Below are positions 6,750 through 37,990 of a DNA stretch of 56,341 bases, in pieces. Under the pieces are notes generated by a model. It was not told the DNA's origin. It did not search any database and was given only the letters and a program-made list of their open reading frames with translations. The position numbers and the translations under genes are program-made. Position 1 is the stretch's first letter. The number at the start of each line of letters is the position of its first letter. Origin of the DNA: Chara braunii (Eukaryota; Plantae; Charophyceae); assembly GCA_003427395.1 (NCBI GenBank), contig BFEA01000018.1:5015602-5071942 (forward strand), in the 5' to 3' direction.

Positions 6750-7010
6750 TGGGGGGGGAGGGGGTCCTCATGGGTTGTCCTGGGTCTGTGGGTCGGGTGA
6801 CCCAGGCCTAGCACTCACCCACCTGTCACCCACCCACTTGGGTGACCCAGGCCTAATGTTGACCCACCTGTCACCCACCCAGGCTGCTTGGCCTTGACCC
6901 GCCCTCATCCCACCTAGGTCACCATATCAAGACCCGCACCTGACCCAATGTCCTCGTGGGTGGGGTGGGTGCAGGTGGGTGCGGGTCTGGGTACCCGGTG
7001 CTCATCTCTG
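6750..7010 (-). mobile_element. Possible hAT-like non-autonomous element end interrupting LINE ORF2
   Basis: LINE frame stops at CAGAGATGAGCACCGGGTACCC (minus strand), followed by clustered GGGTGACCC/ACCC repeats; the other end was not located. Confidence 0.35.
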
Positions 7011-8332: not shown

Positions 8333-8351
8333 GGTGAGGAGGGTGATGAAC

Positions 8352-10754: not shown

Positions 10755-10786
<32 letters not shown>

Positions 10787-12313: not shown

Positions 12314-12339
12314 GTTATTTGTTAAAATAGGACATTATA
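12314..12339 (+). repeat. Left TIR GTTATTTGTTAAAATAGGACATTATA
   Basis: 25/26 identical to the reverse complement of 37965-37990. Confidence 0.95.
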
Positions 12340-12729
12340 TTTTAAATTGGTACTCGCACGCTATTAATTTCATGTTAAAATCGCTATATTTTGTACCTGA
12401 ATGGAGCTTAGGAACCCGAAGAATGCAATTGAGAAGCTATAAATTGAATCTAAACTGGAGATTCAAGGCAATCACTTACTGATCATGATGGATTAAGTGT
12501 GGATTCCATTGCACTTCCATCAATTTTGTAACTTAAAAGCCGTTACGGTTACAACATGAATTGTTGAACTCTCCATTTCTTTACACCTTGCTCAATTTTG
12601 AGTCAGCATTGAGTCGGACCTCTTTTAGATGACATTGTGACTTCCCTTAATTTATTGAAACTCAATCGAAGTGGGACATTTACGACAAGCACACGGATGG
12701 TTTAAATACTAATAGTCTCGTATGGATTC

Positions 12730-13000
12730 TGTCGCACTTCGATAATATTTGCTTTAACTCTATTAAATGTATACTAATCACGAAAAAGTTTAACGAATCA
12801 CACGACAAACGAATGACACGACAAACGAGATTACGGTTGAAGTACAGTGACTATGGGTTCCATCGCACTTCGATAATTTATGTACTACATACTTATTAAA
12901 AGACGTGACACTCAGTCTGTTCGGTGTGATTTAAGGATGGATTCCAACACTGTGACACTTCGATAATTTTTGACTCTATCACACTTCGACAATTTATGTG
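12730..13000. repeat. Left subterminal repeats (CACTTCGATAATTT-like, ~4 copies)
   Basis: Motif near 12735, 12865, 12956 and 12982 in the AT-rich left end. Confidence 0.65.
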
Positions 13001-13383
13001 ACTTTAAAGACGAAACTGACATGTCATTGTCATACATTGAAATGCACNNNNNNNNNNNNNNNNNNNNNNNNNNNNNNNNNNNNNNNNNNNNNNNNNNNNN
13101 NNNNNNNNNNNNNNNNNNNNNNNNNNNNNNNNNNNNNNNNNNNNNNNNNNNNNNNNNNNNNNNNNNNNNNNNNNNNNNNNNNNNNNNNNNNNNNNNNNNN
13201 NNNNNNNNNNNNNNNNNNNNNNNNNNNNNNNNNNNNNNNNNNNNNNNNNNNNNNNNNNNNNNNNNNNNNNNNNNNNNNNNNNNNNNNNNNNNAACTGTAC
13301 ATTGAACTACGTCTAAATTAAACGCTACGAGCCGCAACAATGTAAACTTTCTAAAACGCTATCATTTACAAAATTTGAAGTTC

Positions 13384-14295
13384 CTACTGATGTCCCCGCG
13401 TCCCTTTAGAACCAAACCCGTATAAGGCATTCATAGACGACCCGAAAACAAGGGTTTGTGGCTGTCCCTTCGTCGCCACCCCCGAGAACACCGAAATGTA
13501 CTTCATCCTTACAAACCTACAGGCACCAGCCAAAGACTTACCGATGGCGTCACGCACACAACATGTCACTTGCTCTACCTCATGCCACTTATGAACCTCA
13601 TCAATTTGAATGACAATCTCCAAATCGGATTGTCCGTTCTCGTACAGAAGGCGCAAATTCCCCATGTTGCGACCATAGACTCTTAGGTGGTTGCAAGAAA
13701 CTATCACTACAGCGTCTACCAAAGTCCGCTTTCGGTTTGAACATACCACACACAACACTCTGCAGAAGTCGGAACTGGCTACAGACAACCGTATGCAACA
13801 ATATGACACATCTTTTGGCTGTAACCCGGCACCACGCAACGGATATACTTCCAAAAACGGATTGTAGGATGCACAATCCAACAACTCTTGTTTCAAGTTT
13901 GCAGACCACACCCGAGGTGACCTCGTTACGTTGTCCAGACGAAGGTAAAATCTGTTATTCTCTTCCTGCCTGAGCGCGGCGCGCAGGGACGGAAGTTGCC
14001 TGACACCAATGACATAATGAGGTACTTTGATCAGACTTCCCCACTCCATCGCGGAAGCAAATTTGTAGTCCTTATGCCATGGACATTTCCTTGCCAAGAT
14101 GGCTCTATCCCATTCTGCCTCGGACCACGCATCGATAGGCTTGTCAAAGAAGGGGACGACGGTTATCGACGGGTCGTTTTCGGTATCGCCTCCCGAACCA
14201 TGGAATCCGCATGCACAAGGGTGAATGGGACATGCATAATCATGTTGATGGTTCATGACTCCTGTCGCACTCCCTACACAAGACATGAAATGCAA
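13384..14295 (-). CDS. Transposon cargo orphan protein A (303 aa; paralog of 26959-27906)
   Basis: Intact ORF colinear with its paralog (YPLRG, VSYCC.RL, SDF.RVLCV, LVDAVV, FVRMKY.SVFS, GSS.NAL.GFGS). True start uncertain, possibly spliced. Confidence 0.8.
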   Translation of the reverse strand: MHFMSCVGSATGVMNHQHDYACPIHPCACGFHGSGGDTENDPSITVVPFFDKPIDAWSEAEWDRAILARKCPWHKDYKFASAMEWGSLIKVPHYVIGVRQLPSLRAALRQEENNRFYLRLDNVTRSPRVWSANLKQELLDCASYNPFLEVYPLRGAGLQPKDVSYCCIRLSVASSDFCRVLCVVCSNRKRTLVDAVVIVSCNHLRVYGRNMGNLRLLYENGQSDLEIVIQIDEVHKWHEVEQVTCCVRDAIGKSLAGACRFVRMKYISVFSGVATKGQPQTLVFGSSMNALYGFGSKGTRGHQ

Positions 14296-14763
14296 AGAAA
14301 ATGAAAATGAAATATCAAGATAGTAGAAAAATCGCCTTCATGATGAACTTGACTTAAAAAATTGTTGAACCATCACCAACCATCTTAAAAAATTAAACCG
14401 TAGACCGTGGACAAAATTCGCTACGCAAAATTATTGCAACAATAATATGCTCCATTCTGAATTCTCGTCCCTTCAAACAATTATTTTACAAAAATCTCAC
14501 TCCCCCACTCTATCGGGCGGACGTGCACTAATCGCTCTTGTCCCCTCCATCTACACTCCCTTCACCAGATGGACCNNNNNNNNNNNNNNNNNNNNNNNNN
14601 NNNNNNNNNNNNNNNNNNNNNNNNNNNNNNNNNNNNNNNNNNNNNNNNNNNNNNNNNNNNNNNNNNNNNNNNNNNNNNNNNNNNNNNNNNNNNNNNNNNN
14701 NNNNNNNNNNNNNNNNNNNNNNNNNNNNNNTCTCACTCCCCCACTCTATCCGACGGACGTGCA

Positions 14764-17106
14764 CTAATCGCTCTTGTCCCCTCCATCTACACTCCCTTCA
14801 CCAGATGGACCTTCACCAGATGGACTCAGATCGAGAAGTGCAGCTTTAACATTCAGTCGAACACTGGAAGGAATGACAAGTCCAGTTGTGAATGGTCTTG
14901 TACCACGGACCGGTCTCTCCCAACCAAAAGTGATCGAGTCAGCATCCTGCCATTGTGTCTGGTCAGTCATTTTCCATCGTTTTTCCCATGCTTTCTCATA
15001 CAGTTGTTCGAGTGACTTTGCTCTCCCAGTCGGCACCCAATATTCCACTAGCACTTGATTATAATTTTGCGAATTACAATCAACAACCACCCGAGAAAGA
15101 GCCTTGCCCACCCAGATTGGCACACCGTTGGACAGATCATCGTCGGAGGGGCGACGGATAAGAAAAGTGCCCACGTCGACATGCACGAGGGGGTCGAAAC
15201 TAGTCTTCGGGCGATTTTTTCTTCGTCCAACAAACAACGGTTCCCTATCATCGTCGATGTTGACACTGTGAGGAGAAGGTTGTTGATCGATTTTGAGCAG
15301 CCGTGGTCGTGGCCAAAAACTGCTCAGGGGTTGTGAGGACAACCCGTTGGCGATGATCTCATCGCCATGTTTGATAACCTCCTCCCAATAACACAAAGTT
15401 GTTTCTCTCCTACTCACCTCATGGTCATTGTAAGTGCACCACGTCGACCGCCTACTCTCCAACAACTCACGGAATCGAACAACACCATTTTTGCCATTCA
15501 AATAGTCATTTCGAGGAAGGGGTTGCACATGAGGCGGGTCAAACGGCCACGAAGGACCAGCATAGCTTTCATCGGGGTTTTGATTGAACCAAAAAATCGG
15601 ACCTTCCTCGGGCAACCATTCTTCGTCATCGCAAACCTCCTTGTACAACATCCCCGGACTATCTCCAACCATCAAAAATTTAAGCAAGTGCGATTTTGAA
15701 ATACCGGTAATGTCTGACGCAACGCACGGGTCCACTATACTAATCCAATCTTCCATCGTATCGAGGAAAATACATTTGGGAGACTTTTTGTGGGATTGCT
15801 TTATGAGCTCGAAGAACTCGTCCATAGTATAAGCGTCTACGTCTTTCAATTTCTTCGAGAAAACGCTGAAAGTAGCGTCAACGTATGTATGGGTGTGTCC
15901 CACGAGCATGAAACCTATTTCTACCTCTTCAAAAACTTCGAACTTAACCAACAGTGCAGCCAGGGCACATATGTATTTGTTCTTGTTTTCCTGCCAACAA
16001 TTATCTGCTTGAATGCGCAAAAATCGTGGCAGTGGCGTCCCGCTCCCTTGAATTTCGAGAAGGGTTTTCATAACACAAGTAGCGACCATGTTGGAATCGT
16101 GTTTGAAATACGGAAACCACGTGTACACATATATACTAGGGTCTCTGCCGTGTGCAATGACGCCTGTCAGATTAGTCTTCATCATCATCTCGTGCCTAAG
16201 TGCTTTCGAGTAGTTCGCTTGACCAATATGGGGGATAGTTGTTTTCTTCTGATCCATGCCGTCAATGATGAGACACAAACGCTCGTTCGGACGAACCATG
16301 GAATCAGTTTTGGTTTGACTGTAGTCCAATCTGTGTTCAACTTGCCTCCTTTGGTGTGCTTTCATATCCTCTCGAGCACGTTCTCGATCTCGAGGAAGAG
16401 CAGCATATTGTATACGTTCCTTCAGTTCATGACAGACGGCGCACTTCGTGAACGTGTTAGATTGCGCGAGGAAAACGTGGAAAAAGTGTTTCCGCCACAA
16501 CTTATAAAAGTTGGACTCGGACACGACATCGAGGCCAGCGGCCAGAAAGTCGGATTTGATGGACTCATAAATTGATCTCTTCGTCAAAGCAGCCAGGAGT
16601 CGAAGCTTCGGTCTGGAAACCCCACCTTGGTTAGCCACCTCATTCGGCATGCTATCCGCATGACACTTGATGAACGTTCTCATGCTGGCAAGCATGGCGA
16701 CCGTTTTATTGGTTGGCCTATATTTTTCCGTCAGGCAATGCTCGAAACGCACGTAGCCATTGTCGAAACGCTTTTTGTAGCTGTAAAATGTATTACGCGA
16801 GACACCGAGTACATTGTAGTACGCCCTAATGCACATTGAACGTTCCAACTCCACAGGGCGGACACGTTTCTGTCCACTTTCATTTACTGTGAAATCCTTA
16901 ATACTTTTCATCCACCACTCAGCTCGCTCTCCCTGACTCTTACTGTACAGTCCTTGTCTAACCTTTCGCACTTCCTCAGGCGACACGTCGTAACAACATC
17001 GAGCCTTGCAACATGCCATGCCGCGCACCATGAGCAGTCTTTTTCCGGACAACATGTTTCTCGCTCTTTTATACTGTTCTTTCCTCCTAGCGTTCCTATT
17101 ATCCAT
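14764..17106 (-). CDS. DDD/E transposase, 780 aa, Sola1-like by motif (superfamily tentative)
   Basis: Intact ORF. N-terminal CC..RCC and C.RAY..VLGVS HTH-like segment, CxxC, and catalytic-type motifs IIDGMDQ, QADNC.QENKN and GHTH..VDATF. Confidence 0.88.
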   Translation of the reverse strand: MDNRNARRKEQYKRARNMLSGKRLLMVRGMACCKARCCYDVSPEEVRKVRQGLYSKSQGERAEWWMKSIKDFTVNESGQKRVRPVELERSMCIRAYYNVLGVSRNTFYSYKKRFDNGYVRFEHCLTEKYRPTNKTVAMLASMRTFIKCHADSMPNEVANQGGVSRPKLRLLAALTKRSIYESIKSDFLAAGLDVVSESNFYKLWRKHFFHVFLAQSNTFTKCAVCHELKERIQYAALPRDRERAREDMKAHQRRQVEHRLDYSQTKTDSMVRPNERLCLIIDGMDQKKTTIPHIGQANYSKALRHEMMMKTNLTGVIAHGRDPSIYVYTWFPYFKHDSNMVATCVMKTLLEIQGSGTPLPRFLRIQADNCWQENKNKYICALAALLVKFEVFEEVEIGFMLVGHTHTYVDATFSVFSKKLKDVDAYTMDEFFELIKQSHKKSPKCIFLDTMEDWISIVDPCVASDITGISKSHLLKFLMVGDSPGMLYKEVCDDEEWLPEEGPIFWFNQNPDESYAGPSWPFDPPHVQPLPRNDYLNGKNGVVRFRELLESRRSTWCTYNDHEVSRRETTLCYWEEVIKHGDEIIANGLSSQPLSSFWPRPRLLKIDQQPSPHSVNIDDDREPLFVGRRKNRPKTSFDPLVHVDVGTFLIRRPSDDDLSNGVPIWVGKALSRVVVDCNSQNYNQVLVEYWVPTGRAKSLEQLYEKAWEKRWKMTDQTQWQDADSITFGWERPVRGTRPFTTGLVIPSSVRLNVKAALLDLSPSGEGPSGEGSVDGGDKSD

Positions 17107-17859
17107 GCTATACCTTCGTCTTTCGCCTGGCAGAGGTGCGAATAAAATCTGCAGTATCTCTCTGCATCACCCCTGCCAGACAATTCCGACCCAGACTGAC
17201 TCTGACTTGGAAGCGCATCATCACTTCGCATATGCGTTGGACTCGCCCGTGTTGTGGAAAGCTCCTCCGAAGAATAGTCAGTGGCAACCAAGTTCATAGT
17301 ACTGGAGCTAGCGCGAAGCAAAGGTCCACTGGAATAAGACCGTTGTCCAGACGAGTAATCAGTGGCCACCAACCGCTCACTCTCGTCATCAGACGATGCG
17401 TAAGAAACACCCATTGGCACGCAATTGTTGTGCGCCGAAGTTGTGGGGTGCACCTCGCCAGGAATGTGGAACTCTATCCGGGAGGTAGACGGTTCTTCGG
17501 CCGCGGACGTTGTTGCCAATTCTGTAGGCAGTTGGATGCAACCTCCAAAGCTCTCACGAAAAGCGAGATTTCGTTTTCTGNGNAAATCCGCAGCTGACTG
17601 TTGGAACGGCGAACTGTCCGAAGAGGTCGTCGGGGCCAACTCCAGGTGTTGTAGCTGGCAATGCAAGTCGACCGCTTGTTCAGTTTCCATAGCCCGGTTC
17701 ATGCGGTCGTTCGCCGAGCCTTCTTCGGCGCCGTCATGCAACCGTCGGTGCAGCGGATGCGATTCCCGTCAGCGCAATGGATTATTCTCTCTTGTGCGGG
17801 TCGAACGGGTCTTTCGAATTCGTGTCCACACCCTGCAAAACAGTGGAGCGAACTGTAAG

Positions 17860-19505
17860 CACGGTCAGATTTATGCGTTGAGGGCACAGAGCTCGCCGGG
17901 ATCCGAATTTGGCGGGTGCAGGAGTAGCAAGGAACCTGTTTTTGCATGGCTTGTGTCAGTGGAAGGTAGCACCAGTGGGTGCACACAAGGAACGCTATGT
18001 TTGGGCGAACACAAGGAAGGATCTGTTGTCGGTGAACGATAGCGCATAGAACAAAGGGTAGTGGTGGATGCACTACTACACAATTCGACGCGGCGCGACC
18101 CCAAACTGACCCCCATAAACTCGATTCTCACCATCGTCTACGCGAGCTCGTGCAATTTTCCATTCACAGGTACTAGCGCAAGAGCTTATCGAACGCGGAC
18201 ATCCCCACTGCGTAGATAAGAAAAATGTAGAAAAGGATGAAAGATCCCCCCTTCAACCCTTCCAAATATTGATTCGGCCAGTTGAGAAGGCGACCCCCGA
18301 TTCTGCAACAAGACTCCGCACACCGCGACGGTCAAAAACCTTGGGGGGCAACAAAGATCGTGGGCGCGAAAAATTGCTCGCCTTCATAAATCCCCTCGAA
18401 GGGGTTAATGTGGGTTGCTGACGGTGACAACGGCCGTGTCCCTTATTTTCAGCAACCCCCATGAACCCCTTGAAGGGCATTTCAGAGGGCGAGCAATTTC
18501 TCGCACCCACAGTCCTGTCGCAATCAACTCACACTCGAAGCTCCAGGCGCCACGCAAAGGACGGATAGATTTGCGTCGATCCTCGAAGTCCGCCAGGATC
18601 CGAACTTGGTGGATTCGCCTGCATTTGTAACGGGTGGATGGCGTTTGCACAGAAGCAGGTGTTGCTCGGGCGCACCGCATTTTGGGGCGCCGATGAACGA
18701 AGATCCACGGCACACCAGAAATGGACCCGGCCAGCGACACCGTCGTCAACCCCAATAAACCCCTTTCAGGGCAACTTACAAGGCGAGCAATTTTGCGCAA
18801 TACCAGGCCGCCGACATTGAAGACGGACGGAGAAGTCCAAGCCGTTGAAAACAACGGTCAGATTCATGCGGCGCCTCGAAGTCCTCCGGGATCCGAATTT
18901 GGCCGGTGCTGGAGTAGCAAGGAACCTGTTTTTGCGCGACCGATGTCAGTGGAACGGAGCGCCAGCGGGTACACACAAGGAGCGCTATGCTTGGCCTCAC
19001 AGAAGGAAGGCTTTGCCACTCTCGAGTTGTCGTTGAACGTCAGCACGCGCAGAGCAAAGGGCAGCGGTGGATGCACCACCACAAAATCGGGCGCAGTGCG
19101 ACCCCAAACTGACCCCTAGTGCAAGAGTTCATCGAGATCGGACATCCCAACCGCGCAGACAAGAAAAATGTAGAAACCGATGAAAGACCCCCCTGCAACC
19201 CTTCCAAACCCCGATTCGGCTAGTCGACAAGGTGATCTCCGATTCGCGCGCCGGTAACATCGACGTGCGAAAGCGCGAACCGGAAACCACGTAGAAACAC
19301 GAGCATGTGTGCGACAAGAATCCGTGCACCGGGACGGTCAAAACCCTCTGGGGGCAACAAAGATCGACGGCACACAGACAAGGGACACGACCACTATCAC
19401 CGTCGGCAACCCCCACAAACCCCTTGAAGGGCATCTCAGAAGGTGAGCAATTTTTCGCACCCACAGTCCTCGTGCAGTCAACTCACACTTGAAGCTCCAG
19501 GCCTC
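17860..19505. repeat. ~1-kb-period diverged direct duplication upstream of the transposase
   Basis: 17861-18545 aligns with 18854-19500, e.g. ACGGTCAGATT.ATGCG, GGAGTAGCAAGGAACCTGTTTTTGC, GACCCCAAACTGACCCC. Confidence 0.85.
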
Positions 19506-21523
19506 ATGCGAGCACTTTTGCGTGCCCGGAGGCCTCTGGTAATCAGAACGCACTCGGCAGTCGTGTCCGTCGAAAACGGCGGTTAAATTTACGGGGGACC
19601 TCAAAGTCCGCCGGGATCCGAACTTGGCGCTTGCTGGACTGGCCAGGAACCGGTTTGCGCGGGGGACGACGGATATTTGGATGACCGGTGTGGAATTGCA
19701 CAGAAGGAACGCTAGGCTTGGCTGCATGTTCAGGGAGGCCCTGCTGCTGCTCACAAGTGTTTGTTCCAACAGAGCACNCAGAACAGAAATGGTCGTCGCA
19801 GGTGCACCACGTCGGAAATTGGCGCAGCGCGGCCCCCTATAGACCTCCATGGACCCCGATTCTCCTTATCGACAAAGTGAGCACTTGCGGCAATCCAGTC
19901 GCAAATGTTGCCATCCTTGATGACAATGACTGCAAGCACAAAAAATAAAAAAAACACGGCTGGTGGACCCCCGATTAGTATCGCAGACAAGGCGAGCTCG
20001 CAGTCGGGCAATGGCAGGTTCCACAGCCAGGTTCATGGGACCACGTACGGGTGCCAACCACGAAGTCCGCCCGGATCCGAACTTCAGATCGGTTGCCGCG
20101 TTCGACCGGGAGCATTAAACACTTTGTTTTTGCTGGGGTCCCGTTGGTAGGACTTTTTTTTTTTGCGGCAACGCCAACGAAAGAACAGTCATGCAACCAG
20201 GACTCTGAAAAGATCCATGCAAACCGTAAGCGTNNNNNNNNNNNNNNNNNNNNNNNNNNNNNNNNNNNNNNNNAACCAGGACTCTGAAAAGATCCATGCA
20301 AACCGTAAGCGTCTTATTTCAGCGACGCGGTCGAAACAACAATAATCATCCGAGCAGCCCGCGACTTCGCATGCTTCAGATTGCAAGTTCGCCGGGATCC
20401 GAACTTCGTCGCACGCTGAAAACTGGCATGGCGTTATGAACTATCGACCCCACGCCCGAAAGATGGGAACTGTGTCCCGCAAAACGTAGTCATCAGGGCA
20501 ACCTGGGATGGCATTGTGACTGCGAACGCGAAGTCAACAACCACAAAAAAAATGAGAACTTCGAATCCCGGCGAACTACAGCAATCATGCGCTATTTTCG
20601 CACCTGCGCGTGCTCTCCCTGCGGCCGCACAATGGCAACAGATTGCTGCTTTCGCGAGAGCACTGCGCATGATTGTTGTAGTTCGCCGGGATTCGAACTT
20701 CCCATCTCGCCAGGCAACCACATGCCACGCGCCGTTTTTCGTTTAACTGTTGTTGGTTTCGAGCTTGCGGTGACAATGGCGACCCCCCTTGCCCCGATGA
20801 CTGAGACGTTTCCCGGAGGCGGCCGGATTGTTCGTTACTGAACGAGGCCATGTTTTCGTGTCGAGGTTGTCATCACGAAACATGCGGCGCTCACGCCGAA
20901 GAAACGCCATCGTCATTGCAGCGAGCGGCGCAAACGTTCTCCATCGCACGCACGCAACGTGTGCATTCTTCGTTCTGGAGCCCGCGGATGTTGCACGCAC
21001 AGTCCTAGCATTTGTCGTGCGGAATGCGATATCGCATCCCTCACCGCCAGCGCCAGGAGCGCGCGCTCAACATCCATGGCCTCTATGGTGGATCATGTGC
21101 ACGTTGTGTGCGCGGGATGGAGACGACAGCAACTCTCCCGGGATTGACGCCATAGTCTCTTCGGGGAGGGAGGCTCAAGTGCTGCGGCGAGAACACGAAC
21201 ACGGAACGACGACCCCCTCCTGTTTATGAATACCTTACCTCTCACTACACGCCACGTGGACGGCAGACATCCTTCCCACCAAGGCCACCGCGCGACGCTT
21301 AGTACCAACAGCGGTCGCACGCAGCCCATCCGTCTCCTTTGTGATAACCAACCTCTAATCTCTTTGTTGAGAACATCAAACGAGCGACGGAAGTGTTTCG
21401 AAGGGGTTTCGTGTTCCGCTGGGAATAGGCGATTTCGCGTTTGCCTCGACCGCGCGGGAGTGGTTTGCAATGTCCAGCTTGTGATCAACGACAGTTTTTC
21501 TTCAATGCCAAGCCAAACAAGAG

Positions 21524-22477: not shown

Positions 22478-23747
22478 CGCAGGACGCGGAGACGAGATGT
22501 CGAAGCGGAGACAACCGAACCACAGACGACAGTTGTCGACGAGAGGAAACCCCTGCGCCCACGCCTGCCGCCGCCTGGCGCAACAGCGGAGTAGAAAAGG
22601 CGATGGAGGATATCGCTGACGGGATGTCGAGCGCGAATGCGCTCGTCAGGCTTGAGATGCGAAAGGGCTGCCCCAGACCCGAGGCAGCTGAGCGTCAGAC
22701 TGTCGTCGCACCCCATGGAAAGACNNNNNNNNNNNNNNNNNNNNNNNNNNNNNNNNNNNNNNNNNNNNNNNNNNNNNNNNNNNNNNNNNNNNNNNNNNNN
22801 NNNNNNNNNNNNNNNNNNNNNNNNNNNNNNNNNNNNNNNNNNNNNNNNNNNNNNNNNNNNNNNNNNNNNNNNNNNNNNNNNNNNNNNNNNNNNNNNNNNN
22901 NNNNNNNNNNNNNNNNNNNNNNNNNNNNNNNNNNNNNNNNNNNNNNNNNNNNNNNNNNNNNNNNCCCGCGGTTCTCCCCCCTCACCCCTGGAAAGTACAA
23001 ACTGCCCCCCGCCGACACCTGAGACCCCCTCCACCGGGGCCCGCAAACCCGAAGACACGAACACGAGGGGCCCGGAACAAGGGCCCGTTTTCCAATGACG
23101 TCTGGGAAGGGCCAGCCCGTAGGGACGTTTTTGTCACATTTCGACGCACCAGGCCCCCCTCGCGACAATTTCGACGTGCAGCCACCGTTCGATGCGCGGA
23201 TCGAACAGCCGCGAGTCGGCGCGTGGACCCTGCACGGAAATCCGAAACGGAAGGCCCGAGGGGGCCTCCTGTCCCGCGCGCCTACAAATACGAGCGGCGC
23301 CCTAGGCATTGACGATGCGTTTTGTGTTTTTTGCTGAGGAGATGCTGCCCGACGGAAGCCACGCACCTCATTGTCGTCAACAGCTGGCGCGCCATAGCTG
23401 GCACAACCATTCTTCACCGCGCACGTTTCGTGGCACCGACGCACCCCACATGCCCTCGCATGTCCCTCCGCCCACCAAGTCGCTGTCCACGTCATATTCG
23501 ACGTCGCTTCCGATCTCCTTTCTCAGAAGGCACGACCGCCACCCCACACAGCACCCCAGCAAACGCGAAGTGCACGCCCAAAGGTGGACAGAGTGTCGTC
23601 ACGACAAATGTCGGGGTTCGCGCTCATCTTCACACGGTGAGTGCGCACGCAGTCGGGATGTATGTTTGCATGTGCGCGCGTGCGGGGGAGGTTTTTTGTG
23701 ACGATATGCTCGCGCAGATCGAAAGATTTCGTGGTTGCATGTGTGCG

Positions 23748-23748
23748 G

Positions 23749-23779
<31 letters not shown>

Positions 23780-23950
23780 TGTGCGATTGTGTGTTTGTGC
23801 ATGCTTCATTGTGTGTGTGTGTGTGTTCGAGTGCGTGTTCCTTTGTGTTTGTGTTTGTATTGAAGTGTGTGCCACACGCGCGAGGCAGGATCGTGCGCGT
23901 GTCTGTACCTGAGGGGCGTGTGTGTGCGGGCGCCGTGTGTCGGCGCGCGC

Positions 23951-24012
<62 letters not shown>
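23748..24012. repeat. (GT)n microsatellite region
   Basis: Directly visible. Confidence 0.95.
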
Positions 24013-24014
<2 letters not shown>

Positions 24015-26958: not shown

Positions 26959-27906
26959 ATGAGTGCCGAGACGCGCATTCGCTTGGCAGAACCTTTTCGT
27001 CCTTGTGCGAAATCCGTGCGGCATTTCAACGGTGTGACAACGATCCACGGAGCGACCGCAGAGGACTTCGACGAGGACCCATGGATGACCGTCGTCCCGT
27101 GCATGGACGCGCATGTTGACAACTGGGGCGAGGGCAATTGGGACAATATGGAGACTCACTGCCCTTGGGCAAGCCAGTACAAGTTCGCGAATATGTCGGA
27201 GTTCGGGGACCTCATCCCACTGCCTGACGCCGTCCTCGGACATAAGTTCCTGAACCATATGCGGAAAGCACTAAGCTGCATTAGCCGCTATTTCAGTCGC
27301 CTCGAGTGCCACAACGTCAGGTCATCGCCACAAACTTGGGGTGGCTCACGGAAACAAGAGTTGGTGGACTGCGCTCGTCGCTGCTCGTTCCTGGACCAGT
27401 ACCCGCTCCGTGGCCCCGGAATTTCTCCACGAGCTGTGTCGTACTGCTGTGTGCGGTTGACTGTGTCCGGATCTGATTTCGCCAGAGTTCTGTGTGTCGC
27501 TGCTTCAAACAAGAGCAGGAAACTCGTCGACGCAGTTGTGCTCGTGTCGCGCAACGAGGTTGTGATTGAAGGGTCCAAATTCGTGCCGATGCGTGGGCCT
27601 GAACGTGTGGATGGGTGGCCAGATTTGGTGATAGCAGGTCAGGTTCGAAACTATTCGTTGTTTCGTGAGGTTGAGGAGAAAGTGGCTGACATACAGGACT
27701 GCATAGGAAACTCCTTAGTAGGACCGGGGGTGTTTGTTAGGATGAAATACATGTCCGTTTTTTCGGATAGTGCATCGGTCAATGAACCGCAGACCCGCGT
27801 ATACGGATCGTCACTGAATGCTTTGTTTGGCTTCGGTTCACGACGTCGTCCCGGGGGATCCCCAAATGTCGCCACATCCGAACCGGTCTTTAGTCCTTCT
27901 GTTTGA
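26959..27906 (+). CDS. Transposon cargo orphan protein B (315 aa; paralog of 13384-14295)
   Basis: Intact ATG-initiated ORF with colinear similarity to protein A over ~260 aa. Confidence 0.82.
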   Translation: MSAETRIRLAEPFRPCAKSVRHFNGVTTIHGATAEDFDEDPWMTVVPCMDAHVDNWGEGNWDNMETHCPWASQYKFANMSEFGDLIPLPDAVLGHKFLNHMRKALSCISRYFSRLECHNVRSSPQTWGGSRKQELVDCARRCSFLDQYPLRGPGISPRAVSYCCVRLTVSGSDFARVLCVAASNKSRKLVDAVVLVSRNEVVIEGSKFVPMRGPERVDGWPDLVIAGQVRNYSLFREVEEKVADIQDCIGNSLVGPGVFVRMKYMSVFSDSASVNEPQTRVYGSSLNALFGFGSRRRPGGSPNVATSEPVFSPSV

Positions 27907-29225
27907 GGGAAAAGAACGACGAGGGACGAGATGCGGTTGTGTTGCCTAACATGTGAGATTTGTAGGACTGCAGAGAAGTGTGAGACTCCGCGGTTGCTGG
28001 TACACGCTGCACCGCGCGCTTGTCGTGCAAATCCCTGGTCGTCGTTCGGTTCAGTGACATGACAAAAGTCATGTTGGACGTCCGTCTCTGACGCCGTCTC
28101 CTGCCATTTCGTGCCCCGACGAAGTTCGGATCTCGGCAAACTTCGCATTCTGGCCTCTCCGTTAATTTGTCTCTGATGTCATTGGCGTCGGGCGGGCCGC
28201 GGGAAAGACCCCTCACCGCGGAAGGATCTGCCCGTAACCTGTTTTCGCCCGTCCACCATCAACGTGTGCCAAATTGTCAGTCACTGTCGTAGCGAGATGC
28301 CAAAAGCACTCTTAGAGATCCCCGTCGCAAGGTCGCGCGAGCTTCGCGTTTCCTGAAACCCGTTGGAGATCCTGGTTGGCGGGCCCTCTTGTTGGAAATC
28401 CTGTTGGCACCGTGCTAGGACACCGTGCTAGGACCCCAACTTTCTGTCTGTCTCTCTCGCAGCCTCCTGAAGTTCGGATCCCGGCGAACTTCCTGTGACG
28501 CCTGTGTATTGAACGGGCGCTGGGCTTGATGATCCCCCGTGGATTGCGGCACGAGTCAAACCGTGATCCACAACTGCTCCTCCAGGGACTCATACAATGT
28601 TGTCACGGCTGCTCGTTCGAACTTGGCTTCATCCAATGCCAAGTTGCGCATATCAGAAGAAGTTCGGATTTCGGCGAACTTGTCCTTCTCAAGCGGCCTT
28701 TTGTGTTAGTGCGGCCTTTCCGGGTCGTGGTTCAGTCCAATCTGTGTTTGCCTGACGCCGTCTCTGCCTATTGCATTTTCCTGAAGTTCGGATCCCGGCG
28801 AACTTCACGTTTCGGTGGGTGCGTTGGTTTGGCTTCGGACAGGCACTTTTAGTACGGATCTCGGCGAACTTCGCGTCATGAACTGTCCGGGTTAATATTG
28901 CTAAACAAAGGACACTGCCCCGTCCAACGTGGGCTTTGTGCGTCACCACCCGTCCATTCCCGATCCGGTGGCCATCCGTGTTCCGGAAAAAACCGACGTG
29001 GTTGTCGCCCGACTGCATGAAGCGTATGCCCTTGTAAAGAATGATCTCGTTGCAGGTAAGAGGTCATTGCTGGTCTTCGCGTTAGAAGTTCGCGGGATCC
29101 GAACTTCGAGGTCCTCGGATAGCGTCATGTGACCGACGTGTTGAGGGCAAGGTGTGCCTCCTCTGTTTTTGGCATGCGTTGTGCTTTGACTGCGATTTGA
29201 TCGCTGGTGTTTTATTTGTTTTCCG

Positions 29226-32200
29226 TTGTCGTCCGCAGACAATATGTCTTCGTCCAGGGGCGAAGGGGAGCCTGCAGCGACCTCCGGGATGGGATCTGGG
29301 AAAAATTCTACAAAACGGCCGTCTACGACCTCGAGGACGTGGTCCGACCACGCTAGGTCGAAATGGTTCGTCGACTGGTGCTGTGCTGATGCTACGAACC
29401 CAGTCCAACAGCCGTGTGGTTCTGTGATCTTCGTCGAAGCCAACAAGCGCCGCAGGGTTCTGGGGGCTGTCTTGCGGTGGGAGAATGCGAAAGGCAGTCG
29501 TCGACGGTTTTACATGAAAAATGTGTACGGTTCGAAGGGGAACGCCGTAGCCGGTGCCAAGGGGGCAGTTCTCGACATGTGTCTGTTCGAGGGGTTCGGA
29601 GCGGGTGCTGCAAACACCCCGTTCTACAACGACCTCCGGCAGCAGGGCGGGTTTGTTTTGGGTCGACAGTTCTTCGACCTGTTGGAGGACAAGGGCATTG
29701 CCCTCGATGTCCCTTGTGAAGTCGGTCCCGACCTGGAACTGTCAATGCCTTTGCAGCCGTGCGGCGGTTGTGAGTCGAGCGGGGCAGCGGGGGAGGGGGG
29801 GGATCTGGGTTCCGGGGAGGCTACACATGTGCAGCGGGAGGATGCCAGAGGTCAGTTTGACGACAAAGAAGATGAGGCGATACCGCGTCCGCCGTTTTCG
29901 CCGTCGAGGGAAAGAGACAGGTCCGTGCTGTCCATACCTGGGGTCCGGCAACAGACCGCAGCGGATCCCGGAGAAGAGGGAGTCCTGTGTGGGTCTGACT
30001 TGGAGCCCGCCGAGGGCCATGGCGCGGAAGGCGAGGCCGTGGGCGGGGAGGAAGTGCGGGGCACTCCCCAAAAAAGGAAGGGACAATGTCAAGAAGAGTT
30101 GGTGGGATCTTCGAAGAAACAGAAGACCAAGACCCCGAGGACTGTGGGAGAGAAACGGAAGGGGAGGGGGGTGGAAGAGGGCCACCCGGATAGCAAACCT
30201 CCAGCTTCGAAACATAAACAGCCTGAGTCGGGACCTTCTTCACCGCGGCCTGCCATCGACGTGGACGCCGGGTACGTCATGGAGTACAAAGACGGCGTCA
30301 GGACAAGGTGGGAGTTTGAGATCAGCCCGGCTCAGATCGTTGACATGAGGGAGTGGGAGGATCTTTACAACCAGCGGTCGCTAGATCCTGTCCTCGTGGA
30401 AACGATAAGGGAAGCAATGCGGTCTGCGTTCGAAAATAAAGAACAGACGTACGAGTTGCCGGTCTTCAAGCTCGCACCACTGGGGCTTCAAAAACCAACT
30501 CCTGGGACCAAGGCACAACGTCTGAAGCCAGAGGAGTGGAAGGATGAGCTGGTGGGAGAATACTTCTACTACGCGGTGTGCGGGCAGCACAACGCGGCTG
30601 CAGCTAGGTCGCTGCTCGGCAGCGAGGTGGCCAAGAAGTACAATTTCGAGCGGTGGCCGGCACGGATGGTGTACTTTTCCGACGATGACTTCGAAGGGTA
30701 TTTTCTNNNNNNNNNNNNNNNNNNNNNNNNNNNNNNNNNNNNNNNNNNNNNNNNNNNNNNNNNNNNNNNNNNNNNNNNNNNNNNNNNNNNNNNNNNNNNN
30801 NNNNNNNNNNNNNNNNNNNNNNNNNNNNNNNNNNNNNNNNNNNNNNNNNNNNNNNNNNNNNNNNNNNNNNNTTCTATGAAAGACATTCGATGGCAGTGGA
30901 AGCATGACGGCTGCCCGAGAGCTGTGATGGGGAACCCTAGCGGAAAACAAGATCAGGTCCGGGCTTGGCGTAAGTTTTGTACAATGGCGCTCTGTAAGGC
31001 GCCTCAAAACAGCTTGTGGCTTCTCGCGGATCAAAAGGAAGAGGAGGCCATTAAGAAGCAAAATGCTGCCCTGCGTTCTAACTTACCTCTGGCGATGGCC
31101 GGGGAAAATGTCTGAAAACTGGCCGTGGAATTTTTCGAAAAATGGGAGACGGGCAGATTGCTGAGCCACAATGGGGCGAAGTGGACCGTCAAAAAGAAGA
31201 AGGTCAAAAACGTAATGCCTGGGGTCGCCTACATCCACAACGACAAATTGGGCAGAACGGAGGTGGTGTACAACGTCCCCGTGGACCCGCCGAATAAAAA
31301 GGGCAAAAAGGAGAAAGAGGAGGGCGATTGGTTCGTGCAAGTGCCAGACCCGGATGCGCATTGTTGAAAAGCAATGGAATCACTCACGGACAATGAGAAG
31401 TGTCGCGTTCTGAAAAAGGTTCTTGCTTGCGAGGTCGTTTGGGTCCAAGCCGGCTCCCCGTCGTTGGGGAAGTTGGAAAAGCTCAGCGTGCAGGACATGG
31501 TTCAGCTGGTGAAGTGTGACCGCGTGCTGGTCCGGTTGTGGAATTACTACCAATTCAAGCACGAGAAGAGGCCGGACGCGGACTGGATCCAAAGGTACCC
31601 TTTCCTGAAATCGAGGTCTGCCGTGTTCAAGAAGTTTGAAGGTCAGGGATTGGATGACGAGTTATGGGATAACAGCAGGAAACACGTTTCCGACTCGGCG
31701 TTGTTCAAGGACTGCCCGCCATACAAGGGTTGCAACTAGGACAACTCGATTGAGGTGACAAAGAAGTTGGCGGGCCACAAGAAGTTGTCCGTCGACTGAA
31801 GAAACAAGGTTCTCTCCGTGTTGAATGGAAGCAGACTGAAGAGCCGGGAAGTAGCACTTGCCGAAGGCATCGTTCACATTAAATGGAAAGACGCGGGGAA
31901 CGTGACATCCATCGCGCCGTTCGCCAACGACCCTTTAGAGGCGGACATCAGGGGCGCAGAGCTGAAGGAGGCAGTGACTGCCACAAAGAGCCACACGTTT
32001 GTCCTCGATCTGTGCGAGCCGGTTGACCTCAAACTGTGGAAGCCCCAAGCGTGGGAGACTTTGAATTCCTATCTTCAGACGTGGTGTCCCTCGCATTGGA
32101 CTCTCGTTGTTTTCGTGCCGCGGCAGCACAACCTGTCGTTTCTCGCCAGCATGCATCATCTTTCTTTCGTCAAGCTGTTGGAAGGGAAGTGGGTGCGGAG

Positions 32201-34460
32201 AGTGCAGCAAAAAAAAAGCTTCCCCGTTGGGAACAATTTGTACACGGAGGAAGACCGCATGTACATCCTCTTCAAGGGTGACGATCTGCGCGTCAACACG
32301 TCCGTGGTCTACGAGGGAAACCTGCCCACGGGTGCCGCTGCTGCGGTGCGATTGCCTCAGAGGGTCACCCAAACGGATGTGTCCGAGATTCCTTTAATGC
32401 CTTGCGACTGGTCGCTGGTGGCGCCTGAACGACAGGGCAACGTCTACGGGGATATGGATCGCAATCCGACCCAATTCGTCGGTCTTCTTGATTTTCTTGG
32501 CAAGAAGGGAGAGGGTGTCGTGTTCCTTGGGAAACCGCACGCGCGAAGCGTCTGGGAGCTTCTGAAGGCCGGTCGGCTTGTTGTCGCAATGGAAGGGAAC
32601 TCCGACCTCTTGCAATTCACAATGCAGGTGGTGAAAAGCGAGGTCAATTCGAGTGGGCACAATTATGAGTTCATGGTCGTGAGGCCAACACGGGATAAGG
32701 TGTGAAGCAAGAAGACGGATATGTGGTTCAAGTTGAGCGAGAGGAAGAGGAACAAGATATACGATTTCTTGTTCCTTCAAACGCGTCCGAGGAGGGACAC
32801 TGACGCCGAGTACATCCGCCGGAAGGACCACATGTTGGCACCCCTCGACAACTACCACTTCGCCTCCCGCATGAACGCGAAGACGTTTATCGAAAGGCTG
32901 CGGTCGCTGTACTTCGTGGAGTCCGAGGAGCAGTTGAAGTTAGCCAGTTACGCTTCCCTGATCTCCACTGACGACGAGGAAGCCATAGGTGTGGAGTTTG
33001 TCGCCAACGCGAAGGAGGAGGAAAGCGACACGGAGAGCATCAACCTGTAGTACGACCCGCCTCCGGCGGACCACGGCCGAGGGTCCTCGTCGGCCGGTCC
33101 ATCACCAAGCGCTGCAGCCCTCGTGTCACCATTGGCCAAACCGGCGTCGGGCACCACCCCGATGAAGTTGCTGGAGAGACTTAGAGCTCTGGCCGCCCCC
33201 CCACCCGCTTTGCGTCCCGGGTCCGTTGTCCCGCCTGATCATCCATCTTGGAAGGATGACAACATCCACTTCCTACTTGAACCGCAACGTCATTCACCTG
33301 AGCAGGACTGGGGCCATGACATGGTTTGGCATCCGGGAATCATCCAGCCAGCGATACGAAATGGCGAGTGGGTCATGGGCGTGGCAATCCCGGGCGCGGG
33401 ATGGGTGTCATTCCCACGCGAGTCGAAGTCCAACTTCCTGCACCTCGCGAGGATTTCTGTCCTCCAGAAAGTGAAGGTCGAAAATGACACTTTAGCACCC
33501 AGCGACCTGCCCCTCATTTTCACTGCCGGTCGACTGTTTGACGAGCTTCAGGACAAGTGCTGGTTGGAATTGACGGAGGACTACTACGAGCTCGACACGA
33601 GTCCGTCGAAGGGCGTGGTGGACTGGAAAGCGCCCCCTCCCAGTGGGCCGGACGGTGGTTCCGGGGGGGGGTCACCTGGAAGCAGAGGGGATGGGGGTCG
33701 CGACGCAGGGGGTGGCAAAGGAATCCCGCCTATGGGGGAGAGAGGGTCTCACGGCCGCAACACAACACCGGGAGGCAGCGCCGGGGTAGCGGGTTTCGCC
33801 GTCGACCGGACTCCGTCAACAGGCACCCGGCCCGAGCACACGACACACTCCGCCGACCCCCAGACTTCGTCCGTGGGCTCAGCGAGGGACACGTTGGCAG
33901 CCTTGGTTGCTCTGGGCAGTCGCTCGGCCAGAAAGCCGAAGTCCGCCAGGATCCGAACTACGTTGGGTGAGGAGCCGCCAGAGCGGTCCGGAATGCGAAG
34001 CTGCTTTGGGTCGGGGGATCCAAGCACGAATCGAGAAATTCGCAGCATTGCGGCGCGGGACTGAGACGTCGGAACGGTGTCGCCTGAGCGGGAGCGACGG
34101 CCGCAAGGATTGCAGCGGGAGGCTGCAAGTGCAAGGTCCGGCGACACGGAGACCACGAAGTCCGCCGAGATCCAAACTTCTTCGGGCGGGGTTTGTCGGC
34201 CAGGGATTGTCGTGCCGTTGAGAGGGGCAGCGTGCACGGGGACGGAAGGGCGGTCCTCGCGATTCGACACGGGTACCGCGGAAGGGGACGAGTTTCGTGG
34301 GAGGGAAGTAGGGGAGGAAATGGAGGAACAGAAGGGAGCGCAAGAAGGGGAGGAAGAAGGGGAAAAAGAGGTGGAAGGGGAGGAAGCGGGAGAAACTGAG
34401 TTAATTGATTTGTTTGAAGGAAGGGAGGGTGCCTGGAGAAGACGAAGTGGAACACAGTGA
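29226..34460 (+). pseudogene. Large cargo gene: ParB/Srx-like domain plus degenerate beta-class amino-methyltransferase-like domain
   Basis: ORFs starting at 29226, 31125, 31374, 31818, 32721, 33123 and 34077 share one frame, separated only by 7 point stops (N gap at 30707-30871). ParB-like ISPAQI..NQRSLD..VETIREAM..YAVCGQHNAAAAR; MTase-like motif order at ~31990-32630. Confidence 0.75.
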
Positions 34461-35250
34461 GGACGATGCCGGATCTGGAGAGTCGTCTGACGAGTTCGGA
34501 CAACTGTACGAAGAGCATCACGAGGATGATGTCGACGACGATGCCACGACAATAGAGATGGAGACACAAGTGGTCAACAACCTTTCCGCAGAGCCTGAAG
34601 GCCATTGACGTCTGCTGTCGACTTGCAGCACCGGTTCGACGAGGCTTCCGTCGATATCAGCCCGTCTGAAAAAAGTCGACGTATAAGCATCGACGAAGTT
34701 ATCGACGGTATCCTCGGCGACCACAACATGTCTGCCCGTCTGTCCGCAACTGCCAACGTCCCATCTTCCGTGGCAGCTGCCCTCGCTTCGTCGCCGCCGA
34801 AGTCTCTGGTGCTGCAGGCCACCCTTGCCGCCGAAGTCTCTGGTGCTGCAGGCCACCCTTGCCGCCGAAGGGGAAGGCGAGTGCGATGGAGGACAACATG
34901 TGACGTCCCCAAAAAAATCGAGGTTCGGCGGTCAGGCTCTTGACGTGCTCGCTTTGCCTGCGCCAAATTCACCATCGAAGAAGCGGAGAGAGAAACAGAC
35001 TGGTAAGCCGTGAAGAACGCCTGCGCATCCGGATGTCGCCAGATTACAGTCCGCACTATACAAACGACGACTTTCCACACTGTCTGTGCATACGGGAAGT
35101 TCCGGATGCCGGCATGCTACAGCCAGCAGCCCTTCCTACTCCAACTCGTCGGCCTATCTGTGACTCGGTCGGGTTGCTAGTCGAGGGCGGCGAAAACTTC
35201 GTCCAAAACCTTACACTCCATCCAAGGAAGGATTTGCCCCGGCTGAGGAA

Positions 35251-35930
35251 GTGGCCAAGGTGCTAAGAAAGTGACCAAGTACATGGACTGACAGTTTTCC
35301 CTTCTCGGGAATACTGTCGATTTTAGTCCGCCGGGATCTGAACTTCCTTTGTCGATGCGTGATGTGGTCAGTCTCAGTGGGGCTGGTGTGTTGAAAAGTC
35401 CGCCGCAGTCCAAACTTCGGGGATTGCTGGCCTCCGGCTTCTGTGAGTTGTGGTGGTTTTCCTTTGCGAAGTGCGGGGGTTGATAAGCTCGAATGTTGCA
35501 GTCGTTTTGTTTTCCAGTCGCACAACCGCACATGGGTGCACATGACCACGCGAGATCAGGGTCCTGTGGTTGGAGAGGTCCTACTTCACTGTAGGCCAAG
35601 GTGCTAAGAAAGTGGCCAAGCACATGGACTGACAGTTTTCCCTTCTCGGGAATAGTGCCGGATCTTAGTCCGCTGGGATCCGAACTTCCTTTGTCGATGC
35701 GTGATGTGGTCAGTCTCAGTGGGGCTGGTGTGTTCAAAAGTCCTCCGCAGTCCGAACTTCGCGGATTGCTGGCCTCCAGCTTCTGTGAGGTTTGGTGGTT
35801 TTCCTTTGCGAAGTAAGCGGGGTGATAAGCTCGGATGTTGCAGTCATTTTGTTTTCCAGTCGCACAACCGCACCTAGGTGCACATGACCACGCGAGATCA
35901 GGGTCCTTGGGTCGGAGAGGTCCTGCTTGA
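35251..35930. repeat. ~340-bp tandem duplication, two palindromic motifs per unit
   Basis: GGCCAAGGTGCTAAGAAAGTG.CCAAG.ACATGGACTGACAG at ~35253 and ~35594. Confidence 0.9.
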
Positions 35931-36284
35931 CTGTTGCGTCTGTACGAATGTATGGTTCTCATTTTTCGTTTTGTCTTTCTTCTGTTGCACATGGTTGGTG
36001 TCGTCTCGAACACGGAGGTCCTCCAAATATCCAGAGCACATATTGCAGAAAGTCCCCGGGTTGAGTAAAAAACACAAGGATATGTTAAAGGCATCAGGGG
36101 TTGATGTCGAGATCGGGAAGAAGGAGTACACCGTTGCCATTGAGGAATGTCTTTCCCTTCTTGCCCCAGAGAAAGGGACATATCCACGATCTGTGAGTAG
36201 GGGTCAGGCCATGTATGAGAAGTACTTAGCAACGCGTCATGCACCGGGGGACTATGTCTAGAACTCCGTTTCTCACTACCCCAC

Positions 36285-37067
36285 GTGTCCTTTGCTCGAT
36301 GTTGTGCAGTGCGGGCAACAAGTGCAGCACGCGGGAAAAGTTTCGCTTTGACGATTACGCCTATGAGCTTGCGGGTTTTGGATGACATTGTACGAGGCTC
36401 GGTGCCGTCTAACACTATTCTCTCTATACTGGACGATGGTCAATTTCGGATTGTAGCAAAAGATCTCCTCACCCTCTTGCATGTCAACGACAGGGTGAAT
36501 GATGAGGTGGTCAATTTCTATATGGCGTTTTTGGGGTCGACCGCATGTGGGTCACGTGACTTCTCTTCAGACCTTCAAGTCTTCAGCTTTAATTTGTTCT
36601 TCTTCAGTAAACTGTGACTTCAAGGACACGGTGGGGTGCAGAGGTGGGCTACAAACGTAGATTTGTTTCGTTACGATATTATCTTCGTTCCTGTCCACAA
36701 AGATGATGATCACTGGATCCTCGTTTTCGTCAACATGAGAGATGATGTTCTCGAAACTTTTGATTCTTTTCCTCGCATTGTAGCTGATTCTAGTTTTTAC
36801 CTTAGTGTTTTCGGGTTGATTGTGCAGTATTTGGAACGTCTAACATCACGTAGGCGGTCGGGTAGGAATTGGAAGTTCATGGTGGGAAATGTTGTGGTGG
36901 ATGGAGTTCCGAGACAAGTGGATGGAACAAGCTATGGTGTGTTCATGCTGATGTATGCGACGTTGTTGCAACATGGAGATCGACCGCCTTTTCGGTTCTC
37001 TTGTAAAAATATTCCGCTTCTTAGACGACAATTAGCATCATGTGTCTTAGAACATCGTTGTCTTTGA
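36285..37067 (+). pseudogene. Ulp1/SENP-like C48 cysteine protease, inactivated
   Basis: NDEVVNFYM, FN.FFFSKL, DLF.YDIIFVPVH, HWIL, TFDS and PRQ.DG.SYGVF motifs; in-frame TGA at 36615; the catalytic Cys position reads Tyr. Confidence 0.9.
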
Positions 37068-37649
37068 TGGATTTGATTGACTTCGAAACTTTTTTTTAAG
37101 GTGTTTCATTCATTGATCGTTAAATTTCGTAAATTGAGACATTATTTAATTGCCCTTCTGCCAGAGGCATTGCTTTCTTTTATCGTTCCGAGTTCGCATT
37201 ATCTACGGTAAGCTCAATGCATGTCCTGCGTCATGTATGGGCTTTGTAATCTATGTCACGTAATGTTTCATGTTCTGAATTCTGTTCAAGTTGAAGTATT
37301 GTGTTCCATGTTTCGAATTCTGTTCAACTGGAAGTGTAAACATGATTGTGAAATTGGTTGGTGGATGAATGAGAAATCTCATCTTATGTGAAATTGGTTA
37401 GTGGATGCCCAAACCTTCTTTGCATGACCATTTAAAATGCGGATATTCATCGTGATGGAGCACAATTTAATCTAATTCAATCTAATTACATTGCTAATTT
37501 TGTTTACAAAAGTTCAACAACTATGGATGTCAGCAAACTTTTGCGTTTGGGGCGACTGAACGGGCATGCCCATGTACAAACACTGCAGTCAAAAATGAAT
37601 TCGTAAGAAAGAGGACAGTGTCACAATATAGTTACTGTATCTTTCATCA

Positions 37650-37885
37650 CATTTATGAAATTGAAGTTTGACAAGTTAGAATCACGACACACTTTCGCAC
37701 AGGGTTCCCTTTGGTGTGCCAATCGTTGTTCGTTTATGAAGTTTGACTAGTACGGATCCCAACACACTTCCCCACAGGATCACCAACATGTTTTTGAAGT
37801 TCAACAAGTAAGGATCCCAACACACTTCCACATTTGGGATTTCATTTATGAAGTTTCACAAGCATGGATCTCAGCACGCTTCTAC
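37650..37885. repeat. Right subterminal repeats (TGAAGTTT.AC.AG..GGATCCCAACACACTT-like, ~4 copies)
   Basis: Units near 37662, 37737, 37795 and 37849. Confidence 0.7.
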
Positions 37886-37964
37886 ATGTGGTTAACCCCT
37901 GGATGGGCATGCGTACGTTGCTTAGGCTGCAACCAAAAATTAATTCGTTAGAAAGAGGACACAG

Positions 37965-37990
37965 TATAATGTCCTATTTTAACGAATAAC
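37965..37990 (-). repeat. Right TIR
   Basis: TATAATGTCCTATTTTAACGAATAAC, reverse complement of the left TIR with one mismatch. Confidence 0.95.

Follow-up and report, generated by a model that had tools for sequence, protein, structure and literature searches.

We analysed a 56,341-nucleotide stretch of the Chara braunii genome (assembly GCA_003427395.1, contig BFEA01000018.1, positions 5,015,602 to 5,071,942; hereafter the window) and found in it a giant multi-gene DNA transposon at 12309-37995, which we assign from its predicted proteins to the Sola1 type, the transposase core having been matched by eye. Besides the transposase, the element carries two orphan genes, a long gene with predicted ParB-like and methyltransferase-like domains, Ulp1 protease exons and a short palindrome in many copies. 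We tentatively propose, at slightly below an even chance, that these parts form a family self-recognition module, in which the long protein would bind its own palindrome, spread from it and, together with Ulp1, keep the element expressed.

The palindrome of the window copy (motif A) has 8-bp arms around an asymmetric 8-bp spacer. At up to three mismatches it occurred at 34 sites, all within the element (0.00 expected from shuffles), and 30 kb of flank held no site at this threshold. Looser matching gave 38-40 sites, in line with the count of about 40 element-specific palindromes in the initial annotation of this DNA. Of the 34, 32 lay outside open reading frames (ORFs), in clusters that precede the transposase, orphan B, the long gene and Ulp1. 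The sites sit in 19 unrelated flanking contexts, in both orientations and with sharp motif edges.

17889-20700, no strand: 8 palindrome sites (cluster 1) upstream of the transposase, some of them in diverged 340-540 bp repeats
25198-26701, no strand: 17 palindrome sites (cluster 2) upstream of orphan B, including a 159-bp tandem duplication
28122-28871, no strand: 5 palindrome sites (cluster 3) upstream of the long gene, from the site scan
33939-34179, plus strand: two palindromes within the low-complexity tail of the long gene, from the site scan
35253-35934, plus strand: 342-bp tandem duplication with palindromes, upstream of the Ulp1 exons, from the repeat and site scans

The cargo travels with the terminal inverted repeats (TIRs), because the full-length C. 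braunii sister copy L007 (29.4 kb, with a target site duplication (TSD) of its own) keeps the gene order between its TIRs: TIR, orphan A, transposase, motif arrays, orphan B, long gene, Ulp1, TIR. This whole order, together with the separate TSD, led us to reject independent nested insertions as the source of the cargo. Two further copies (L006 and L011) cover the right arm and one (L004) the left; the family measures 26-29 kb, and its scaffold copies in C. braunii are 88-95% identical in DNA over the coding parts. Among the 10 loci sampled, cargo was not found mostly away from the TIRs. Cargo, order and motifs co-occur between TIRs in independent copies, in agreement with the initial annotation, which had described one giant DNA transposon unrelated to Mutator-like elements (MULEs) and had correctly placed the transposase and orphan A on the minus strand and the other genes on the plus strand. 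All named close homologues of the cargo were from C. braunii, with no identical protein among the hits, and no relatives were found in viral or metagenome contigs; three metagenome matches to the TIRs showed no other similarity and were taken as chance.

Related families whose long proteins are more distant carry other palindromes. Motif A is kept in copies whose long protein is 56-93% identical. Locus L008 has the long gene (42% identical in protein), Ulp1 and a nearly identical TIR, and at similar positions it carries about 40 sites of a different, perfect 14-bp palindrome. In L012 a Sola1-type transposase is divergent from the long gene (23% identical in protein), Ulp1 lies downstream, and about 22 tandem 128-bp units each contain a 22-bp palindrome. 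Compared in this way, the sequences show motif amplification and motif switching between families, and the likeness to VANDAL elements proposed at the outset, namely an amplified motif that differs between related families, was borne out. A second transposase search did not recover that of L008.

An unlikely alternative is that the palindromes are transposase sites, at which the transposase would bring together the ends of so long an element or switch on its own promoters, in the manner of TnpA in Spm, while the long gene would have another function. Transposases can act as activators with sequence specificity, according to the abstract of 10.64898/2026.08.24.746577. The subterminal repeats, present at both ends as annotated, bear on this:

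12498-12998, plus strand: left subterminal repeats, 5 copies of about 31 nt, from the repeat scan
37500-37882, plus strand: right subterminal repeats, 5 units of about 42 nt each, in which short words of the internal palindrome recur

Both the right repeats of the window and those of L008 (19547-20772) hold words related to their own family's internal palindrome, and full palindrome motifs lie near the end of L008. Such subterminal words fit transposase binding. Most palindromes, however, stand 5-15 kb away from both element ends, and the window family and L008 differ in motif although they have 27 of 31 TIR bases in common.

The candidate binder is the long protein. Its gene runs from a low-complexity N-terminus through a ParB-like domain, helical domains, a methyltransferase fold, a further helical part and a small beta domain to a low-complexity tail:

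29244-34940, plus strand: long gene, one frame with 11 stops, supported by the ratio of nonsynonymous to synonymous substitution (dN/dS) and by domain models
30252-30960, plus strand: ParB/Srx-like domain (limits approximate), spanning a 57-bp gap, with boxes YNxRS, GQH and SxxDN
31818-32702, plus strand: beta-class N6-adenine/N4-cytosine (N6A/N4C) methyltransferase fold with degenerate motifs IV and I, from the structure model

Sequence searches of Pfam, PHROGs, PDB and phage genomes gave nothing significant for this protein, nor did ParB/Srx sequence profiles. The folds were read from a structure model of the homologue P0061 (predicted local distance difference test score (pLDDT) 79), searched with Foldseek. 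Its methyltransferase region matched M.BceJIV, M1.HpyAVI and CcrM (E 2e-5), and the whole multi-domain model gave many ParB/Spo0J/DndB-like matches in the viral library (E 4e-4 to 2e-2). The element order of the ParB N-terminal fold is present in the model, which also aligns at length with phage proteins, about 500 aa in size, in which ParB and methyltransferase are probably combined. The ParB-like and methyltransferase-like reading of the gene was thus upheld by the model; in the window copy the frame is interrupted by the 11 stops. The long protein forms at least 96 clusters at 50% identity (10 of 10 sampled were from C. braunii), and dN/dS is 0.20-0.37 in the majority of the segments of its gene and 0.20-0.45 over most of its length. 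Together with values of 0.38 for the transposase between copies and 0.29-0.66 across the orphans, this shows purifying selection on all three. Near the end of the protein, at 33240-33620, we observed a small conserved beta-rich domain with several invariant Trp residues and no match found; a PWWP-like reading was considered from the sequence and was unsupported by search.

Since motif IV reads DL(C/F/A)xP rather than (D/N/S)PP(Y/F/W) and motif I reads FLGKAHA rather than FxGxG across the family, the methyltransferase fold is probably not a conventional catalyst. That degeneracy makes it quite improbable, in our estimate, that the long protein is an active, unusual N4C/N6A methyltransferase marking the palindromes as self, as has been proposed for an Ectocarpus element. 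Such an enzyme would account for the beta-class fold, for the segment on the S-adenosylmethionine side being among the best conserved parts (median pair identity 0.37), for the Asp that ends strand 4 in all rows shown and for the GGATCC site contained in motif A.

Ulp1 probably forms the spliced C-terminus of the long protein, because its first exon begins at a splice acceptor conserved in L006, L007 and L011 and because it and the long gene make up a single gene in several Chara gene models. The two pieces were searched separately.

35993-37067, plus strand: Ulp1/SENP (Peptidase_C48) exons, broken in the window copy, from PF02902 and the sister-copy splice acceptor

The domain match (PF02902, E 3e-15) supports the annotated Ulp1 protease. 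The window copy itself is defective: it has a stop near 36615, its catalytic Cys is changed to Tyr, and its splice acceptor is damaged; six other loci retain the Cys. Because of the 11 stops in the long gene and the broken Ulp1, the window copy is a decayed pseudogene copy.

In the self-recognition model, the long protein, with its ParB-like, helical and probably non-catalytic methyltransferase domains, would bind its own 14-24 bp palindrome as a dimer, resembling ParB on parS, the palindrome having been amplified upstream of each gene. It would then load or spread along the element, presumably with use of nucleotide; ParB binds parS via a helix-turn-helix and spreads as a cytidine triphosphate (CTP) clamp (PMC7333895). 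The Ulp1 domain may remove SUMO from silencing or chromatin proteins, so that the element's promoters would stay active, both in cis and on sister copies. The protein would diverge together with its palindrome, and therefore each family would serve only itself. Counted in favour of the model are the full-length copy L007, the purifying selection, the many contexts of the palindromes and their placement ahead of gene starts, the change of motif with long-protein distance, the two folds, and the splice acceptor and retained Cys of Ulp1. VANC offers a precedent both for protein-motif co-evolution (PMC5735166) and for fusion to Ulp1 (PMC13317346). We regard as doubtful the stronger version, in which a phage-type ParB-methyltransferase protein became a family-specific, parS-like loading and spreading clamp that takes a SUMO protease along the element against host silencing, protein and palindrome having co-diversified into several orthogonal pairs.

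Besides the subterminal words, several observations weigh against self-recognition. The ParB box GERRxRA is absent, GQHxxxA standing in its place, with a Gln that does not vary across 40 rows. The sampling covered just three motif classes, with labels shared among kin. Locus L009 (long protein 36% identical) has the long gene and Ulp1 together with a related TIR, one also found at the ends of a second family, family B, and the DNA seen there, which has a gap just upstream of the gene, holds only a one-strand direct-repeat array. The palindromes are better conserved than other non-coding DNA in comparison with L007 (88% vs 81%, p 3e-7) and L011 (85% vs 71%, p 1e-4), which speaks for the model, but the test is partly biased, the sites having been chosen near the consensus. 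For Ulp1, dN/dS was 1.1 and 2.9, not below 1, and gives no sign of selection; we attribute the high values to T-rich third positions and decay. CG and CHG transitions between copies were 1.4-2.8 times as frequent as CHH transitions, in the window family and in family B alike, and no local protection of motif blocks from them was seen in the copies compared. The CpG observed/expected ratio of the element is 1.0-1.1, against 0.52-0.62 in several flanks; this is weak support for the model, because some flanks reach 0.8-0.97 and family B elements are equally CpG-rich. To judge from these substitutions, the sampled copies were methylated and are decaying, a pattern compatible with active master copies with or without protection, which it neither supports nor excludes.

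The missing protection would suit another role, in which the ParB-like protein binds the palindromes for the mechanics of transposition, compacting or looping the 25-30 kb element or holding excised DNA. ParB clamps bridge and condense DNA around parS (PMC7333895), and the gene occurs in giant elements, here in Chara and in PMC12477816. We nevertheless judge this role decidedly improbable, given that the sites cluster upstream of gene starts instead of being evenly spread and that the SUMO protease points toward chromatin proteins.

We determined the limits of the window element by comparison of ends. At the 26-bp TIRs of the initial annotation 25 of 26 bases match, and the true ends lie 5 bp further outward: comparison of six ends added five conserved bases, giving 31-bp TIRs, and revealed the TSD that had been missed. 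The two window TIRs match at 28 of 31 positions, all mismatches being C/T.

12305-12308, no strand: left TSD, TTGG, 4 bp (the L007 TSD is also 4 bp)
12309-12339, plus strand: left TIR, 31 bp
37965-37995, minus strand: right TIR, 31 bp
37996-37999, no strand: right TSD, TTGG

The sister copy L007 has CTTT as its TSD, and the empty site of the L004 copy is present in L003 and L005. The window element lies in a decayed long interspersed nuclear element (LINE) on the minus strand, which it splits into 7005-12308 and 37996-39449 and which retains an ORF1-like frame with a zinc knuckle, an endonuclease (9364-10068) and a reverse transcriptase (7005-8024). When the element and one TSD were removed in silico, the ORF1-like frame of the LINE became continuous across the site. 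The window element is a genuine cut-and-paste insertion. A 2-bp or palindromic 4-bp TSD at the 26-bp ends and CAC-type termini had been considered, and both were dropped after the ends were shifted 5 bp outward. None of the assembly gaps interrupts the element. The gap at 30707-30871 in the long gene corresponds to 57 bp, in frame, in three sister copies, and that at 13048-13292 to 286 bp in L007; at 14576-14730 and 20234-20273 the contigs overlap, so that 81 bp and 39 bp stand in duplicate and none are missing, and the gap at 22725-22964 is unread in L007 as well, with collinear flanks on both sides.

The transposase assignment rests on a profile match to DUF7869 (E 1e-55), a domain not mentioned in the literature searched, and on the Sola1 features present, namely the DDD core pattern, TIRs and a 4-bp TSD.

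14764-17106, minus strand: Sola1-type DDD transposase (DUF7869), 780-aa open frame, from the profile match and dN/dS
17107-17741, minus strand: region that probably extends the transposase upstream, its frame kept in L007 and lost in the window

The transposase had been called intact. Its 780-aa frame is indeed open, but relative to L007 a 7-bp deletion near 17158 severs the upstream extension from it, and a conserved Asp beside the third catalytic Asp is replaced by Tyr; the upstream region could also contain an intron. The transposase shares 35-44% identity with other transposases of Chara and 42% with a metagenome protein, a 1067-aa transposase on a JGI metagenome contig of 6377 bp (L010) with no cargo genes in view. 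At about 14850-15200 (minus strand) lies a conserved C-terminal beta-rich domain common to moss/liverwort-like homologues, which may resemble chromatin-reader folds. CMC/EnSpm elements are characterised by CAC-type termini, a TSD of 2-3 bp and a Transposase_21-type domain. We rejected this class for the Chara element, whose termini begin AAYAC, whose TSD is 4 bp and which has no Transposase_21-type Pfam match; Pfam also gave no MULE transposase match in the element's ORFs. Compared by eye, the core pattern aligns with Sola1-1_AP (PMC3985635) and more closely with Sola1-1_Ec32 of Ectocarpus, whose best Repbase match is the moss Sola1-1_PPa and whose TSD is 4 bp (PMC12477816). The transposase tree comprised solely DUF7869 proteins that bear no label. 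The AWWT target preference described as a Sola1 hallmark (PMC3845634) fits only 1 of 6 target sites. We treat it as a family preference, because the curated Sola1-1_Ec32 is not listed with AWWT either (PMC12477816).

Two paralogous orphan genes had been annotated, and they are indeed 45% identical:

13384-14295, minus strand: orphan A of about 300 aa with an uncertain start, its homologues confined to Chara and its fold unmatched
26959-27906, plus strand: orphan B, 315 aa, paralog of orphan A, dN/dS 0.33 against L007
21645-22134, no strand: degenerate GAT repeat, not supported as a gene

For orphan A, dN/dS was 0.44-0.50 against sister copies. The orphan gave nothing significant in Pfam, PHROGs, PDB or phage-genome sequence searches, and a GNAT-like fold was not accepted (model pLDDT 62, best match E 0.08, with a low match probability). 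The acidic ORF of the initial annotation was rejected as a gene: the degenerate GAT repeat has no in-frame Met, and in L007 it is shorter, with 3 stops. That the orphans bind the motifs, or that the motifs are passive products of tandem duplication, seems to us very improbable. Orphan B does lie among motif clusters, some sites do fall in tandem duplications, and an orphan without an accepted fold match could be given such a role. Against binding by the orphans, the DNA seen of L008 and L012 contains motif arrays but no orphan, and orphan B is 79-82% identical to a family B orphan, while motif A is absent from the family B DNA examined. The 19 unrelated contexts with sharp motif edges oppose passive duplication.

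Family B (L002-L005) has a transposase, 44% identical in L003 to that of the window, followed by three or four tandem orphan paralogs, at about 7400-14200. It is the middle orphan of this array that resembles orphan B so closely, which suggests cargo exchange between families. A window-family copy is nested inside family B (L004, 3816), and an L009 element end lies inside an L012-type transposase gene (L009, 22478). Between L001 (9233-15754) and L012 (8-23670), Ulp1 is about 90% and the transposases about 70% identical in DNA, and the orientation to Ulp1 differs, a mismatch that reflects either a module swap or nesting. Upstream of the L001 transposase lie 8 copies of a short motif that looks like one half of the window palindrome. 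Elsewhere in the window element, TG microsatellites (23740-24032) are followed by a block at 24150-24950 with 6 CCAATC and 6 CGATCG words within 800 bp. The word CCAATC recurs often in the L012 tandem unit as well, and the block is possibly promoter sequence. Outside the element, a CrtO match at 52548-53153 is weak (E 4e-4, under the Pfam cut-off) and probably spurious.

The kind of element had been suggested to be undescribed, which does not hold, because Sola1-1_Ec32 already combines a giant Sola1 element with a ParB-methyltransferase gene; the core architecture is thus already described. According to PMC12477816, it is 21.5 kb long, with a 1104-aa divergent ParB plus N4C/N6A methyltransferase gene opposite the transposase; in its authors' proposal, proteins of this sort act on the element that encodes them by binding and modifying it, and similar proteins are said there to occur in red and green algal transposons. 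The TIRs are 282 bp there and 31 bp here, and the Chara element has Ulp1 exons, two orphan paralogs, degenerate methyltransferase motifs and amplified family-specific palindromes, none of them reported in that paper. The Ectocarpus protein was absent from the profile-free long-protein search, and the two cargo proteins are alike by description. The literature searched yielded no Ulp1 cargo, orphans or family-specific palindromes in such an element, and no paper combining Chara, transposon, ParB and methyltransferase; the Chara family may already have a Repbase or Dfam entry.

The Chara element resembles VANDAL/VANC in motif amplification, motif switching and Ulp1 but is not a member. Like VANDAL/VANC and Kaonashi (PMC5735166, PMC13317346), it is a multi-gene DNA transposon with Ulp1 cargo, and as in VANDAL/VANC a short motif is amplified in non-coding and tandemly duplicated DNA and differs between related families (PMC5735166). 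VANDAL elements, in contrast, have a MULE transposase, whereas a Sola1-type transposase and TIRs are found here; VANDAL/VANC motifs are asymmetric words of 8-9 bp, whereas those of Chara are palindromes of 14-24 bp. The VANC domains DUF1985/DUF287 had no match in any ORF or homologue. With bacterial ParB-parS (PMC7333895) the element shares a ParB/Srx-like N-terminal domain followed by a helical region, and a repeated palindrome as candidate target; with phage ParB-methyltransferase proteins of ParB-terminase loci (PMC4738411) it shares ParB followed by a beta-class methyltransferase. It differs from both in GQH for GERRxRA, in the degenerate methyltransferase motifs, in having no ParA or terminase, in a protein three to four times longer and in residing in a transposon of a eukaryote. 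In algae and fungi, giant EnSpm/Plavaka and KDZ elements are likewise large, with chromatin-related accessory genes (cited in PMC12477816), but have another transposase superfamily, other termini and another TSD.

ParB-methyltransferase proteins of transposons have been noted in brown, red and green algae and self-action has been suggested, with no target site proposed in the text read. The Chara clade gives at least three candidate protein-palindrome pairs, which makes the idea of self-action directly testable. If the self-recognition model is true, VANC-like family-specific self-regulation would have originated independently out of parts from bacteria or phages, in an alga closely related to land plants, and the pairs would be a source of orthogonal DNA-binding pairs.

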